NCBI GenBank assembly: GCA_964057225.1
Contig: OZ059895.1
Span: 6,324,001 to 6,388,000 of the forward strand
Length of the DNA: 64,000 nucleotides
Reading direction: 5' to 3'
Source: Auanema rhodensis
Taxonomy: Eukaryota; Animalia; Nematoda
Shown: piece after piece, positions 4,035 through 12,725 of the stretch
Layout: every line of letters begins with the position of its first letter
Position numbering within the stretch: position 1 is the first letter of the stretch
Position numbers and translations under genes: made by a program
Notes under the pieces: generated by a model
Told to the model about the DNA's origin: nothing
Database searches by the model: none
Seen by the model: only the letters and a program-made list of their open reading frames with translations

Positions 4035-7000
4035 TTATTGTTGAACTCCTGCTTCCTCTATTAAATGTCCTGCATCTATAGAATCTTGCATTGATACAAC
4101 ACCTTGAATTTCAATTTCTTCCTGTAATGTGGTTTTGCTCATTTATACGATTTATTGAATATACCTCTCTTTTGCTAGAAGGTAAAAGCGCTCTAGATTT
4201 GTAATCTTGGGAGAAAACGGGATCCATGTTCTCACCAAGCAACTCGGAAACCTGAAAAAAAACTAAAAATATCGATGATATAAGTCATATTACCTCGTCA
4301 TAAGTCAAGTCATGTACCACCCCATTATCATCCAGCCCCGCAATAAGCAGAGGGTGATACGTATCCTGCTGAAAAAAAATCAAAATATTGTAATTGAAAA
4401 TGAAAAGCCACTAACATTATCTCGCAATGCCATTATTTTCTCTCTCTCCGTGTTAGACATAGCCAATGGCATATATATGAAACGCTTCCAGATTCCCAAA
4501 CCAGGAATGTACCTATAACACAAATGCAATGTAAGACAGAAACAATAATAATTTGAATACCTAAGCGAATTTTTATGGAAATGAGCTGTACATAAGTAAT
4601 GCCTACCACGAACCATTAGTCGATTTTGTAAACGGTCACGGTACTTAAAATAACGGAAACTTCCATTTTCATTTGCTTAAAACTTACGAAATGATCTCGA
4701 CAAATAGAATCAATCCAACATTTTCGTTTCTCAAAAGGCTCAGACGGAAAAGGAACCATATTAGCTCCAACATCCCGATGGTTACATTGGACACATTGAA
4801 CTTCGATTTGAGAAACCAGTCTTCTTTCAGCAATCACACTGTACGGATCCTAAGAAAGCTGATAAATACAATCAAATGAAATTTATTATTACCACTGCAG
4901 GTAAATGAGCTTTGCAAATTTTGCAAGGATGCATAGCTAATTGCTCGACACCTTTCTTCATCATCTGAAAGAAATATGATTGAATGAGAAAACAAACGAC
5001 ATTCAAACAGGTTTATCTCCGGATAACAGCTCTACTAAAAGTATTCTTTCTGCTTGTGTAGATGGTGGCCTAATTTCAACAAGGGAATCACTTGGTCCCC
5101 ACATATCACACAGAGGGCATTTAATTAAACCATGAGGTCCTCTGGGTGTGATATCATACTCGGACAAACCCTGAAGAATAGCCGACATAATTTTAAAAAA
5201 ACATGTTAACTTACTAAAGGTAAGGGTATAGACGCTTCATTGAATTCTACACAATCCTCTTTTTCCACAAAGGAATCTTGACAGAAATGATAAACACAAA
5301 GACGATATCTGGTTGATTTTGGTCGAGTTAATCTATCTTTGATCCATTTCCACCTTCTTTCCACTAACCGATTTATAGGAGGTCCACTCACAATATTGTG
5401 AAGCCAAAGCCTACTGCAACAAGATTATAATGATTTTGTTACATAAAACAAAAGATATATACCGTGTTAGTCGTTCGTTAGGAAAAGGCAGCAAGAGATT
5501 AGGATCTTTGAGATCTTCATCACACAAAACGCAATATGTTTTTAACCATTCATCCACTTTTTGATGTAATTGCTGAAGCAGGCAAGATATACTATTGAAA
5601 TAAAGAGAATGCAAAACTCACTCTATATGCCAAATGAGATTCACATATATTTATTGGGCAAAAATGGTAAGTTCCATTATTAATGAAATCATTTCTTCTT
5701 TTTAGCCATAAGACTCGCATAGATTCTTCAAAATCTCTGGGCCAATTCATAATTTCAAGCCATTTTTCATGTTTCACACTGGATAAAAAATTAGCTTACT
5801 CAAATCATAATTCAAACATACTCATCAAACGGCCACGTTCGAGGTTTATGTTCATCCATACTTTTCTGAGAAGATATAATTCGACTGCAAACTTGGCAAA
5901 ACCGAGCAGAGTTCATTTGTTCTCCGCTTAACTGTTCCAACTAAAACTCATTAATACCACTAATTATAGTGTAATATATATACCCGCTTAACAGCATCTA
6001 ATTCTTCGTCACTATCATCGGAACATTCTATGTTACCGTATATATCACTATTAGGTATATCGTTATCTTCGCTGAAATTATAATGTTATCAAATATAGAA
6101 AACAAGAATCATTACGCAAAGCCAAGTTCATCTTCTTGAGGATTAATGCTTTGAAGATGACGAGTATTATCAATAAATAATTGAGAAGTTGAAGGCCCTA
6201 CAAATGCAAACATAAAACAGATAAATTGTATTTTACACTACCTTCTAGTTCTCCTACTATTTGTTCATCTTCATATTGAATATTGGTATCATAACTATAT
6301 TCCGGACGATCATACATATACATTCGTCTACTATACGATCTACGCATTTTATCTGAGAGATACCTATATTGTAAACCATCAACACGATTCTAAATTAAAA
6401 TATAAATGAATGCCATAAATTTTAAAAACCTTTCCAAAACCATCTCTCCTGAGCAGCATTAACTCTTCTCGGCGGGCGCCTGGATCGATGTTTCTTGAAA
6501 GAATAGTATCCCCATGGTTAATCATATAGATTCGATTAGCTTGTTTATCTTCCTCACAAAGCTTGAACATTGAAAATAACAACACATATTCAAGAGAACA
6601 CTAACTGTTGGATCTGGAACAGCATCTTTTCTTAGTCTCCATTCTCCAAATTGGTTTATATCAAAATCATTATCACTAAAATGCCAATCACATAGAAATT
6701 TGGATGCTCCATTTTTTAATTTTTCTTGAAGCAATCTGAATTTAAATCATAAAATTGAATTATACATGGTAAATTGCTTACTCTCGTATAGCAGAATCAC
6801 CTTCCCCACAAATGGCGTTTACCCATTTATATCTAAAATGAAGTAATAATAATTATTCGATTTTTTAAACACTAACCTCCTACTTCTCGTTCTAGTGAAA
6901 GGAACCATGCACCTAAGGAAATTTTTTGCTTGACAATATACACACTTTAACTCAAGTGAATCAAAATCAAACATTTCATCGTCTTGAATAGAGTAACTCT

Positions 7001-7886
7001 GTAAAAATTGTTTAAATGTACTAATGATACTTGAAAACAAAAAACCTCTGGTTCTTGACGCATATCAATTGGCAAAAGTTGCCGGTTTTTTAAATTATGT
7101 GATCCTACTGGAAAGTGAATAGGACAAGCCTCTCCACAATGAGTAGCATCCGAAAAAGCTTCTCGTACCCATAGTTCTGCTGATCGTTCAGCATCCAAAT
7201 TAAACCTGAGAATCCATACTCGTCGTAACTCAAAAGACAAACTAATTTAAATAACAAAATTATAAAATACTCTGTGTTCACTTGGCAAACTTCTTAACTT
7301 TCCAAAAACCTTTTTTCGGCAAATTTGACAATACTTAGAACCATCATTTCGTTTACAATAATCTTGATTTTTGTAACGATCATAATGCCTTAATCAAGAA
7401 AGATTTAAAGATCATTATGCTTATTATTACCGTAAAGGAGCCCCACCGCTACCACCATTGTCTTTTCGTTTTGAACCTTTTTCTTTCCTATAATTCATTT
7501 AAGTTTTATATACATGGAACAAAATAGTAACCTTGGTAACATATCCATAGAATCATTGTTACTCATACCCTGAGCACTTGATTCTTCAACAAGCTGCAAA
7601 TATTCAAAAAGCAAATATTTAACAATTAATTTTGAATTACCTCAACATCCAATTCATTTTCAAGCATGCATTCTATTTTCTGCTCAGGTTGAAACAAGTT
7701 TTGATGGCTATAAATAAAAAAATAATTTTTTTTTGTTTATTTTTAACAATTCAACCTAGGGCCTTCAACATTCTGATATGGTTGGTCATCTAAAGCTTCT
7801 CTCTTTACAACAGGTTCTTCATCATCTATCAGTTCAGAAGTTTCTTGTGAAATACTGGCACGTCCCCGACGACGCGTAGGTGCCAT
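4035..7886 (-). CDS. him-17: Multi-THAP-domain chromatin protein, HIM-17-like
   Basis: Repeated C-x2-C...P...W...C-x2-HF modules (CQIC..LP..W..CPIHF; CVYC..PF..W..CDWHF; CESHL; CVLC..FP..W..CVYHF; CVQC..FP..W..CTAHF). It is adjacent to cni-1, as C. elegans him-17 is (recalled). Exon boundaries are approximate. Confidence 0.75.
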
Positions 7887-7889
7887 TTG

Positions 7890-8360
7890 GCCCAAAACTA
7901 AAACAAAACTATAAAAATGTATATTTGAGCTTGAAACTTATTATGCACCTGATTTGTTTCTTTCATTTTTTATACTATGTCTCAAGAGAGACAAGAGCTA
8001 TTATATATAATAAAGGAGAATTCAAACTTACCCTTTAAAAATTAAAGGACGACGGAAAGAAACCTTTAAACAAACGAGTTGCTCTATACGCACGTTGGTT
8101 GTAAACACAGTGCTGTTCAAAGTGTACATCGTTGGAAGTAATTTTCAAACTTCAAAATTTCAAAATTTCAAAATTTCAAAATATGAATAAAGTAAGTTAC
8201 GGTAATTTTTAAAAAAATTTAATTACCCGGGATTATTGATTTTTATCATATCCCTTGATGAACAAAATATTTCCAAATGAATTTTTGAGGTGCTAAGTCG
8301 ATATTTTTTCTATTTATTTCAGGTGATTAACCATAAAATCCTACTCCAAAACTCAAAAAA
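7890..8360. promoter_or_regulatory. Divergent (bidirectional) promoter region between him-17-like and ALC1 ATPase genes
   Basis: Head-to-head ATGs at 7886(-) and 8361(+); TTATTTCAG acceptor at ~8314-8322; short TTCAAAAT tandem at ~8144-8182. Confidence 0.6.
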
Positions 8361-10886
8361 ATGGTTTTACAAAAGAAATATAACCTTCATCCACTGGAAA
8401 ATGAATATAAAAAGAGAGGTATGCATAATGACTAAGGTTCAAAGTATATTATAAATACTTCTAAGGTATCACCTTGAGAGATTATCAAAAAGAGGGTGTT
8501 AAGAAAATGCTTGGATGGGTTGAAAATGGACACGGTGGAATTAATGCTGATGAAATGGGTCTGGGAAAAACATGCCAGGTTCATTAATCAACTCATTTTC
8601 ATTATGTAATAGTTTCATTCGGGTTTTAGACAGTGGTTACTCTAACAACACTATTTGCTCGTGGTGAAGGACCTTTCTGCGTACTTGCACCGCCTACTGT
8701 ATTGAGCCATTGGGTTAAAGAGATAGAATTGTACGAGTGGGAAATTACTAAACACAAACAATTTGTATTTCAGTTTTTCATGTGGAGTTCTTAATCCTAT
8801 ACAATTGCACACTAGACGTGACGAGTTTAGAGAGCAGCTCTCCAACTTACCTAAGATTACAAAGAATACGGTTGTCGTAGGGCCTTCGGCTGTAAGCAAA
8901 AAAAGAAGTTTTTTTTTTGTAAAAAAGTTTCTTAAGGTTAAAAAATTAATGGGACCACGTCACAAAGATATGCCTGTACAAATTCTTCGACAGTATTTTA
9001 AAGTTGAGATCCCTATCATAGTAGTGGACGAAGCACATTGCATCAAATCTTTCAGCTCAACATTCCGGGAGACACTTTATGTTGGTTCATAATTTCTCTG
9101 AATATATACACAAGTGATTTAGAAATATCCTGGTACATTTATTCTGTTAACAGGAACTCCTATCCAAAACTTTATATCTGAAACATTTTCCCTTTTACAG
9201 TTTGTAGATGTAAGTATGCTAATTGTTTCGCATGATTAGTGTAATTTTAGAAGAGAAAGTTCGATTCAATGAAAATAGATGATTTTGTTGAAGCGTACAG
9301 TTCTAAGGAAGGCTTAGCTAAACTGAAAAAGTTGCTTTCGAATTATATGTTCAGAAGATTGAAAGAAACAGTGTGTAGTCTTCCTGAAAGTTCAGAAGTC
9401 AGTTCAAAACATATTTCTAGTTGTCTAACTGATCTAGTTAGGTTATAATTTATCATGGATTCGCTGAAGTGCAGAAGAAATTATATGTAGAATTTATGAC
9501 AGGGGTATCAACTTGTGTGAAAATCAGTAATCCGTTTATGCAAATTAGGAAGATGGTATCTCATCCTTATATGTTTCGAGGTTTGCCAAAAAATGATAAT
9601 AATAAGAATTTATTAGCTTTGTAGGTGTTGAACCTGAGCCTTTTGTCGAAGGTGAACATTTAGTGACATCTTGTGGTAAACTGTCGGTGAGACTTAATAA
9701 TTTGTGTCCAGTCTAACTGGTTATTTTAAGTTATTGAGTGATCTCTGTTATTATCTTAAACCTCGCGGTCATAAGGTTTTAATTTTTTGTGCATTTCTTA
9801 ATGTATTAGATATTATCGAGGACTTTATGGCTCTGAGAGGTGAGTAAACTTCTTTATCCGTATCACACTTTAAATTGTTTTTAATTACAGGGTACTCTTG
9901 TATGAGATTGGATGGCAGCTGTCCATTAGAGAAGAGAAGTGAAATTATTGATAAATATCGTAATATTTTCGTTTTTGTTTCTCTATTTTTGTTATTTATA
10001 GAGAAAGGTGATACTTTCGCTCTGGTAATGACTACCGAAACAGGAGGTTTTGGAATCACTCTCACCGCTGCGGATACCGTAATCTTCTATGATACTCATT
10101 TCAATCCTCATGTAGATATCCAAGCCAAGGCTCGTACTCATAGAATAGGACAAAATAAGTAAGCATACTTACTACTTATTTGTTGATATTAAAATTTTAT
10201 AGAATTGTACGAGTTATTCGATTACTAGGATCCGGAACAGCTGAGGAGTACTTTTACAGCATTGCTCACTCTAAGATAGGACTTCACGAAGGATTAACCG
10301 GAGAGAATAGTTTGATGTTCAATTTTTTTTGTAGATATTTTTTATATTTAAGTTGAAGCCGACTGCGGATTTGACTGCAAGGCAGTTGACAGTTTCTGTA
10401 ATGATATGGTCCTCAGCGGCAACGTTTTAAATACGAGTGTTAAAAAAATGGTTTGATGCGTACAACTTCTGTCATTGTTTACCATTATGCATATTTTTTA
10501 TAGACTGAAGAGGAGCTTGATAAAATTCTTGGGGCTTCAGATGAAAATGGATGGCTACCTTATGTACATGATACTGTAAGATTCGTTAAACTTGATATAC
10601 TTATATTAAAGTTTTAGAAATATAAAGCTCAGCTTGAAAACCATATTAAGAATCAGTTTACCGATTATTATGTATATCAAGTAATTTGTAATTTTCTTTT
10701 CTTTTTCAATGTTCTGCTGCTCAGGGAACTTACTATCGTAAAATGCGTGAAGAAGGTTTGAAGGAAAAAGAAAAGAAGGAATGGACTCGAAATGCCCGCT
10801 GCAGAGAACGTGATCCTGAAGCATGTTTAAGTGAAAATTTCCTGGCTGATCTCGCTTTAAAACGAAGTGAAGGTTTTACTGACTAA
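8361..10886 (+). CDS. CHD1L: Snf2-family ATPase of the ALC1/CHD1L subfamily (ATPase half only, ends in the linker)
   Basis: GGINADEMGLGKTCQ, VVDEAH, LLTGTPIQN, the ALC1-typical [48 protein letters not shown].HRIGQ and LDKILG. The last exon 10725-10886 ends in TAA; AATAAA at 10996. Confidence 0.88.
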
Positions 10887-11129
10887 AAAAAGAATTACCT
10901 ACTAACTACCTGTACTATTACTACTTATTAACAACAAAAACTGAAGCTTTTTTGTATTGCAATGCATGTTTAACTCTTTGAAGTGCTTTTTTTTGAATAA
11001 ATTGCTCGAAATTTTAATTTTTTTAAATTTTTACATATAGACATGTTTTATTATTCATACTTTTAATGATATGAGTATGTAGTTATTATTATTTTTGAAG
11101 TATTTCAAGATTTCAATTTTTAAAGTATA

Positions 11130-12628
11130 ATGATGGAAGAAAGTGAACAGGTTTTTAATTCTGGTTGATATTGTTATTTACTCCTCATATCTAGAATTTC
11201 GTGTTGAAACATGTAGAAGGGGATATTCTCAATCCTACTCGCAGTGCTGAAGTTATTAACATCCTATTGCACTGTGTAGACGACAGTGGTTTGTGTCTCT
11301 ACAGTGTAAAAAAAATGATTTTTTTTTAAACTAGGTGTCTATGGTTCTGGTGGATTGTTTGATTTGATGAAAAGAAAATATCCGTCTATTCTCGATGCAT
11401 ATGAGAATATTCCGGATTTAAGCAAAGGACAAGCTCATATTGTCATCAATGATGTTTTGAACGGAACTGGCAGTGTTGTCATTTTTTTGATAGCTCAAGA
11501 TCAAAATGATAGAAGTCTGTGAGAGTCTGAGTTCAAAGAAATTGCGTTTTCAGGCCATATAGAACAAGATGTTTTTGAATCTTCAATGAAGAATGCTTCT
11601 GAGTTGGTTAAAACGTTTCCTAATGCATCTGTTAATCTGCCAAAAATTGGTTATGGGACTGATTTGAATTGGAATACAGTATAGTAGTTCATTGATTGCA
11701 TATATCCACAGATTCACTTAAGGTTGAACAAATGATTGAGAGATATTTCTTGAGATACCGAATCTCTTGCACTGTTTTTCATTATAAACGACCTGCAAGG
11801 CCAACAACTACTGCTCGGCGTCCAGCTCTTCGCTTAGTTGATGGTAATGGAGATAGAGATCGTTCAGAATCGCCTTTACCAGGTAGATTATTGACTATAT
11901 GTACTGCTTACATAAAATTACAGCTAAACGAGCTCGGAAACCAATTGTTGATTTGACAAGGTTAGATAACGACGACCGAAGTTCTTCATCATCTTCAAGT
12001 GCTGAGAGTAGTGAAGGTGAATACGAACCAAGTGATATTGAAGGTTAGTTATAACTAATTGGAGCATTTATAACTGGCAGTTTAGATAAACAAGATCCGT
12101 CTAGCTCTGATTCAAGTTTGGAATCAGACGACGAGGAGGAAGAAATAGAAACCGAAGATGATGTAGAGAGTGAAGATGAATACGTGGATGATAGATACAA
12201 GAAACCACCGTCGAGAAAACCTTTTCCTATACCTGAAGTGAAACCAAAATCTGAGGATTCTTTCAACGGAGCAGTTGTTTCACTTTTCGACGTGCCCGAA
12301 GATCTACTTAACGAATATATGTATATACTGTTTTATGTTCTTTATCATTATTTCTTATTTTAGGTCGTTTATCCAACAACAAGGTGGAGAAGTTGTAACC
12401 AATGAAGATGATTTGAAAAAAGCTACAGTGTCTGTTGTTTATAATCTTGAATTATTGCAAAACGCGGAAAAATTAGATGAATTCAGGTAGAATCAAAGAT
12501 ATTTCTAAATCATTAAAATCACTTTTAGACTAAAATTTGATAATGATTGCTTACAAGTTACATCCAATTATCTTGACGATCTGATTGCTGATGTTTCTGA
12601 TGTTAATATCCATTCTTACGTGCTTTGA
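11130..12628 (+). CDS. ALC1-type macrodomain + acidic linker + C-terminal BRCT-like domain protein
   Basis: ATG ATG GAA at 11130 after a TTTTTAAAG acceptor. LKHVEGDILNP..LLHCVDDSGVYGSGGLF..FLIAQ..VNLPKIG..NW..E..I.RY matches the ALC1 macrodomain. A D/E/S-rich tract follows, then FNGAVVSL..FIQQQGGEVV..KATVSV (BRCT-like); TGA at 12626. Confidence 0.85.
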
Positions 12629-12725
12629 AATAAAAAAAAACTATTTATTATGGAGTATTATCACCAGGCATTTCAAAAATTGAGTGAACATACATCAAGA
12701 GATCTCTATACAAAGCTGTATCATA

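Follow-up and report, generated by a model that had tools for sequence, protein, structure and literature searches.

Does a nematode encode as two genes what in human is the single protein ALC1/CHD1L, a chromatin remodeler that acts in DNA repair? The question is raised by a locus in Auanema rhodensis (GenBank assembly GCA_964057225.1, contig OZ059895.1), which lies in a stretch of 64,000 nucleotides (nt) of the forward strand, contig positions 6,324,001 to 6,388,000, here called the window; unprefixed positions below count from its first letter. Two genes follow one another there on the same (+) strand, at 8361-10886 and 11130-12628, with their exons assembled by hand: the first encodes a Snf2 ATPase (the motor) and the second a protein that appears to begin with an ALC1-type macrodomain. 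At the DNA level the two are separate, with a coding motor exon that ends in a stop, a non-coding spacer, and a second gene with an ATG of its own. Taken together, the locus is probably a natural split of ALC1/CHD1L into an operon-like pair. The gene models are as follows (aa, amino acids).

8361..10886, + strand: Snf2 ATPase (motor) gene, 17 exons, ATG at 8361 to TAA at 10884-10886, 601 aa
8361-8418, 8466-8578, 8630-8730, 8774-8891, 8937-9080, 9123-9209, 9251-9397, 9442-9580, 9625-9686, + strand: motor exons 1-9
9731-9839, 9891-9959, 10002-10158, 10203-10309, 10353-10450, 10504-10575, 10618-10680, 10725-10886, + strand: motor exons 10-17
10725..10886, + strand: last motor exon, 53 codons plus the TAA at 10884-10886, encoding a basic/acidic tail
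10887..11129, + strand: non-coding spacer, 243 nt, with stops in all three frames
11130..12628, + strand: macrodomain gene, 9 exons, ATG at 11130 to TGA at 12626-12628, 385 aa
11130-11150, 11195-11288, 11335-11514, 11554-11678, 11723-11882, 11924-12043, 12086-12320, 12364-12486, 12529-12628, + strand: macrodomain gene exons

Both reading frames are open across the 26 exons, and every one of the 24 introns (39-53 nt each) is bounded by GT and AG. The acceptor is AAG, as opposed to CAG or TAG, at five of the 24 introns of the gene pair.

The separation itself was examined at the end of the motor gene, where the first-pass annotation had placed the TAA at 10884-10886 as the end of the motor frame, had called all GT donors of the last exon phase 1 and had noted an AATAAA at 10996. 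All three statements were re-derived from the sequence: the motor C-terminus reads ...DYYVYQ|GTYYRK...SEGFTD and then meets the TAA, all 8 GT dinucleotides of the last exon are phase 1, and the AATAAA is the sole poly(A)-signal-like hexamer between the TAA and 11130. Coding potential was scored by codon-usage log-odds, with the other exons as training set and intron composition as background. The last motor exon reached +32 bits in frame 0 (+3 and -21 bits in the two alternatives), on a par with the best 53-codon pieces from the exons upstream, whereas the best 53-codon window of the spacer reached -22.7 bits; GC content likewise was 0.41 in the exon against 0.21 in the spacer. It is very improbable that the stop and spacer arose by misassembly, or that the locus is a recent pseudogene. 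Since stops fall in all frames of the spacer, over 243 nt, no single indel would fuse the genes, and an 801-nt stretch around the spacer is single copy in the 181-Mb assembly, so that the spacer is neither a transposon or other repeat insertion nor the product of a collapsed or duplicated haplotig. Further points against an artefact or decay are the frames intact over 26 exons with their catalytic motifs present, the length of the assembly contigs (21-25 Mb), and the contigs of independent sequencing runs (below), which hold the exon fraction of the locus. Exon 3 of the macrodomain gene is also single copy in the genome.

The upstream gene encodes a Snf2 family ATPase with an N lobe carrying Walker A and B motifs and a Helicase_C lobe carrying motifs V-VI. 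Pfam PF00176 (SNF2-rel_dom) matched motor exon 2 (E 9e-8) and PF00271 (Helicase_C) matched exon 12 (E 5e-11), and the motifs GLGKT (Walker A), DEAH, TGTPIQN and HRIGQ are all in the model. The ATPase core begins close to the N terminus, LRDYQ being residues 23-27 of 601, and the protein has neither a chromodomain nor a HAND-SANT-SLIDE region, which matches the layout of ALC1/CHD1L; the ISWI of this genome, with a SLIDE domain, is another locus, on C7, the only place where SLIDE was detected. Positions are nearly collinear with human CHD1L, the offset from nematode to human being +23 at motif I and +27 at motifs V-VI. When compared with solved structures, exon 12 scored 51.4 bits with human CHD1L (7EPU 415-461), 52 with INO80 and 51 with ISWI, while exon 2 scored 28 bits with ISWI and 20.8 bits with CHD1L (aligned to CHD1L 45-80), and the motor alone is therefore insufficient for a subfamily call; motor exons 7, 13, 15 and 17 gave no meaningful match among the same structures. 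At motif V of the motor (window 10004-10156) the sequence is TETGG, in contrast to the TRAGG usual in Snf2 remodelers. Motif VI is QAKARTHRIGQ, with both of its arginines kept in an otherwise diverged exon.

The link to ALC1 thus comes from the second gene, as the motor leaves the subfamily open. Its features, in order, are these.

11130..11150, + strand: start mini-exon MMEESEQ, with donor CAG|GTTTTT at 11151 and a 44-nt intron to 11195
11195..11797, + strand: putative ALC1-type macrodomain, about residues 8-165 of the 385-aa protein
11798..12261, + strand: low-complexity middle, with basic residues (AKRARKP), a run of serines and an extended acidic tract
12262..12625, + strand: BRCT-like region, about 93 aa, F-x-G...26 residues...GG-x-V...T-V-x-V-V...Y-L-x-D-L-I

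Exon 2 of this gene, searched against 177,635 PDB sequences, matched only three sequences, all of them CHD1L, at human residues 717-743 and with a marginal E of 0.085. This segment (full-length numbering) is the first strand of the human macrodomain; the Asp of the nematode 'GD' aligns with human D723, and the GSGGLF glycine loop is kept. Exons 3, 4 and 5 gave no meaningful match among solved structures, Pfam Macro gave no match at the locus, and the protein atlas gave no usable match for the macrodomain. The first-pass annotation had also placed the start of this gene at the ATG at 11130-11132, just 3' of an AG at 11124-11125, and a phase-0 exon at 11195 (acceptor AG 11193-11194), and these positions were obtained again.

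Beyond the macrodomain the protein is less readily classified. The low-complexity middle (11798-12261) had no database match. At 11860-12260 the protein holds a run of seven serines and then acidic clusters rich in S, E and D, a pattern that may resemble the casein-kinase-2-type phospho-acidic tracts of DNA-repair scaffolds. The C-terminal region had been labelled BRCT. The pattern seen by eye is in keeping with that label, the spacing from F to GG being equal, again by eye, to that of a BRCT exon elsewhere in the genome; Pfam BRCT, however, gave no match on the three exons of the region, and a genome-wide scan with PF00533 did not return the locus. With nine BRCT exons from the genome as its input, a makeshift hidden Markov model returned E 0.07 at FIQQQGGEV, which covers the GG-x-V motif, and the label is accordingly kept here as BRCT-like.

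If the motor and macrodomain descend from one protein, the place of the break can be judged from the last motor exon. By the offset found at exon 12 (+27), which is an argument from spacing and not an alignment, the motor would end at about human residue 628 and its last exon would correspond to roughly CHD1L 576-628, a range that takes in the regulatory linker segment of human CHD1L (604-624). That human segment binds the nucleosome acidic patch through R611, and mutation of the arginine anchor cut remodeling about 8.7-fold (PMC7116876). The motor tail has an arginine-rich stretch, TRNARCRER, near the same position (by offset).

The stop need not mean that the two halves are always made apart, and the competing account is of a single gene with alternative processing: its main product would be a fused protein of 926 aa, made by joining 10680 to 11195, and the exon with the TAA would serve as an alternative terminal exon for an isoform with the motor alone. 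All joins from GT to AG that keep an open frame were enumerated for the donors of the motor tail at 10576-10886 (donors inside introns left out). The join 10681->11195, which had been named as the one remaining route to a fused isoform, is indeed in frame and gives 926 aa; it skips the last motor exon and the ATG mini-exon, and its donor and acceptor are each used in the two-gene model. A second in-frame route with two used sites, 10576->11195 (905 aa), skips exon 16 as well. The earlier statement that the acceptors tested in 10890-11130 run into stops holds for 10890-11125; at 11126, also in that range, 10656->11126 is open and gives 926 aa, although from weak sites (donor 1.4, acceptor 2.7). 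Donors of the last motor exon joined to 11140, 11217, 11220, 11253 or 11280 were rejected for their poor acceptors, and joined to 11335 since this would delete the first macrodomain exon.

Nematodes have introns of several hundred nt, and the start mini-exon could with appreciable probability be a chance occurrence, both of which would suit a fused gene. Its splicing, however, needs an intron of 514 nt where all 24 local introns have 39-53 nt, and the acceptor at 11194 (score 3.4) is the weakest of the 24 in use (3.4-10.5) and would have to compete with the one at 10724 (6.4), 44 nt from the donor; the used donors score 5.4 at 10681 and 6.5 at 10576. The exon that would be skipped has a full coding signal and covers, by offset, the position of the human acidic-patch linker. 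The fused protein would be left with next to no linker. We regard a fused main product as unlikely.

Sequencing runs bear on the same choice. Four runs from one study, whose RNA label is a guess, hold 0.53-0.55 of the sampled words of 8300-12700. The runs are stored as contigs, with 18-20 million letters each, and 455 words were sampled; the expected shares count 31-mers wholly inside exons, with assumed ends of the untranslated regions (UTRs).

Two separate mRNAs with UTRs (last motor exon and its 3' UTR included): expected share 0.546
Fused-only transcript: expected share 0.486
Motor mRNA alone: expected share 0.33
Macrodomain mRNA alone: expected share 0.21
Genomic DNA: expected share 1.0

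A share of 0.53-0.55 is therefore what RNA assemblies with expression of both genes would give, and it is nearer to two mRNAs (0.546) than to a fused-only transcript (0.486). It leans, weakly, towards the last motor exon being included together with its 3' UTR. Mainly separate products from the two frames are, on the whole, quite likely.

Whether the pair is also transcribed together turns on the spacer and on the flanks, where the following signals were located.

8321..8322, + strand: AG of a TTTCAG acceptor, 38 nt 5' of the motor ATG, a candidate spliced leader (SL) 1 trans-splice site
10996..11001, + strand: AATAAA, with no other poly(A)-signal-like hexamer in the spacer; cleavage expected about 16-24 nt downstream
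11124..11125, + strand: AG of TTTTTAAAG, a candidate trans-splice acceptor, 4 nt 5' of the ATG at 11130
12629..12634, + strand: AATAAA, directly 3' of the TGA of the macrodomain gene

An intercistronic gap of about 110 nt had been proposed, and the motifs bear it out: with the cleavage spacing after AATAAA taken from PMC7668243, the distance from expected cleavage to the AG at 11125 is about 100-113 nt, while most intercistronic distances in C. elegans fall between 50 and 200 bp (median 129; PMC7668243). Judged by positions taken from motifs, then, the pair has two marks of an operon, one shared strand and a short gap from poly(A) site to acceptor. Two more AGs (11099-11100 and 11108-11109) are likewise without an ATG between them and 11130. 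Two UAYYUU motifs lie in the gap, a number not above chance in such AT-rich sequence (about 0.8 expected, by our own estimate).

The genome also holds genes for the leaders that such processing would use. Four SL2-type leader RNA genes were found (C5:14598947, C1:13966750, C5:8569159 and C5:13487563), three of which carry GGTTTTAACCCAGTATCTCAAG and one ...GTAACTCAAG, each with a GT donor and, about 50-60 nt downstream, a TTTTGG resembling an Sm site. The canonical 22-nt nematode SL1 gave 3,673 matches within 2 mismatches, mostly in tandem units of 252 bp. Very large tandem arrays of SL1 leader RNA genes lie at C3:6741531-6766485, about 350-380 kb past the window end, and from C3:14134320 onward; the units are of 252 bp in one array and of 341 bp in the other.

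Both neighbours of the gene pair are on the minus strand, the first exon of the upstream one lying near 7895, and the pair is therefore a self-contained + unit with a single ordinary promoter region, 7895-8361. The upstream, divergent neighbour (4600-7895, -) shows several exon-like open reading frames with Cys/His spacing reminiscent of THAP-type zinc fingers. Elsewhere in the genome there are genes for PARP (three loci) and for PARG.

Two uncoupled genes would need no operon: the macrodomain gene would have a promoter in the spacer or in the upstream gene, and the products would be a constitutive motor and an independent scaffold that reads poly(ADP-ribose). In keeping with this are the weak acceptor at 11125, the roughly 220 extra residues of the macrodomain protein that have no human ALC1 counterpart, and the TETGG in place of TRAGG at motif V, which suggests fast evolution. 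The distance from stop to ATG is, however, only 243 nt, of which about 130 nt are likely to be the 3' UTR of the upstream gene, the spacing is within the operon range, SL2-type leader genes are present, and the flanks leave no other promoter region. Two such uncoupled genes are, in our judgement, rather unlikely.

Several observations weigh against a split and operon-processed ALC1 and have to be set beside the evidence above. The AG at 11125 scores 2.7 as an acceptor, below all 24 cis acceptors (3.4-10.5), and an ATG mini-exon at such a distance would arise by chance with a probability of about 0.1-0.3 by our own estimate, so that the mini-exon is plausible and not proven. An in-frame fused isoform by 10681->11195 is possible. 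The word share amounts to about 2.7 standard errors on one word set, with assumed UTR ends and runs guessed to be RNA. As to identity, the motor exons do not single out CHD1L but tie with or trail ISWI and INO80, the macrodomain assignment depends on the single exon match at the marginal E of 0.085, and the one ground for fission is the fused state of human ALC1.

Searches for relatives were of little help on this last point: exon 3 of the macrodomain gene returned only six repeat proteins from a representative-protein search, spurious by local BLAST, and nothing from a metagenome scan, while a homologue search with the 89-aa read-through of motor exons 11-12 returned three metagenome fragments (41-44% identity) and no nematode kin. 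The literature searched held no statement on ALC1 in nematodes and no natural split ALC1.

Notwithstanding these points, the proposal of the first-pass annotation, that ALC1 underwent fission and was kept workable by operon trans-splicing, stands in part, being supported by the split in the DNA, the spacing, the SL genes, the flanks and the feasibility of the in-trans arrangement with human proteins (below). Co-transcription, the poly(A) and trans-splice sites, an interaction in trans and the origin by fission are inferences. For the reading as a whole, that is, separate products, co-transcribed as an operon and derived from a split ALC1, we would put the probability at roughly 0.55.

Comparison with known systems indicates what such a pair would have kept and what it would have changed. 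Human ALC1/CHD1L (PDB 7EPU, 7ENN, 7OTQ) likewise has its Snf2 motor near the N terminus, at nearly collinear positions, and the start of the nematode macrodomain aligns to human 717-743, including Asp 723. In the nematode, however, a stop and then 243 non-coding nt with a poly(A) signal lie between the motor and macrodomain frames, and the human linker beyond its regulatory segment lacks an equivalent over about 90 residues. The macrodomain protein is longer at its C-terminal end by some 220 residues (the acidic/serine tract and the BRCT-like end), and most exons are too diverged for detection by sequence. ALC1 is defined by a motor and a macrodomain on one polypeptide, and the two-gene model places them on two; it is nonetheless likely that the gene pair works like and descends from ALC1, albeit with a non-canonical architecture.

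A two-protein ALC1 has a laboratory precedent in the engineered ALC1cat and ALC1macro of Lehmann et al. 2017 (PMC5745148). When the human motor and macrodomain are produced as two proteins, they associate stably, both in vitro and in cells, until PARP activity parts them; PARylated PARP1 dissolves the complex (PMC5745148). In human, binding in trans needs R857 and R860. As the separate human halves bind in trans and PARP activity releases them, a two-protein ALC1 is biochemically feasible. The likeness to the nematode pair lies in the two polypeptides, motor and macrodomain, and the difference in that the former is a construct whereas the nematode split would be natural. The SL2 operons of C. 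elegans and other nematodes provide the other comparison: the genes share a strand, the predicted gap (about 100-113 nt) falls within the 50-200 of C. elegans, and the genome has SL2-type leader RNA genes, each with an Sm site, although the operon here is predicted from sequence signals.

On the operon reading, one promoter region upstream of the motor gene would drive both genes. Cleavage about 15-25 nt past the AATAAA at 10996 would end the motor mRNA, and the macrodomain mRNA would be capped by trans-splicing, most likely of SL2, at an AG just 5' of the ATG at 11130, so that the operon would keep the two halves co-expressed. By analogy with human ALC1, the macrodomain protein may then bind the motor non-covalently and hold it inactive or guide it, with poly(ADP-ribose) at damage sites altering the contact between them and the motor's own tail supplying the contact with the nucleosome acidic patch. 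Unlike in the fused enzyme, release by poly(ADP-ribose) would leave the motor untethered, unless a second contact came from the C-terminal region newly added to the macrodomain protein. Because poly(ADP-ribose) binding releases the macrodomain in human, the split form could act through a motor set free upon damage and not through tethered activation. Such a two-component ALC1, in which a motor that has kept its acidic-patch-binding tail is paired with a macrodomain-BRCT protein acting as a poly(ADP-ribose)-controlled inhibitor or adaptor in trans, the two being co-expressed in stoichiometric amounts through an SL2 operon, is a tentative proposal to which we give somewhat less than an even chance.

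ALC1 is a drug target whose regulation relies on an intramolecular macrodomain-motor switch. A natural split, if true, would mean that such a switch can evolve to act across two proteins, and it would offer a simple genetic system in which autoinhibition, recruitment and coupling could be separated, each half being removable alone. The BRCT-like region and the acidic tail hint at scaffold roles for the poly(ADP-ribose) sensor. The arrangement could also inform the reading of nematode gene predictions at this locus, where the predicted model may be fused or split. If the split is true, it would also clearly exemplify a gene that broke in two and stayed functional through the operon processing of nematodes.

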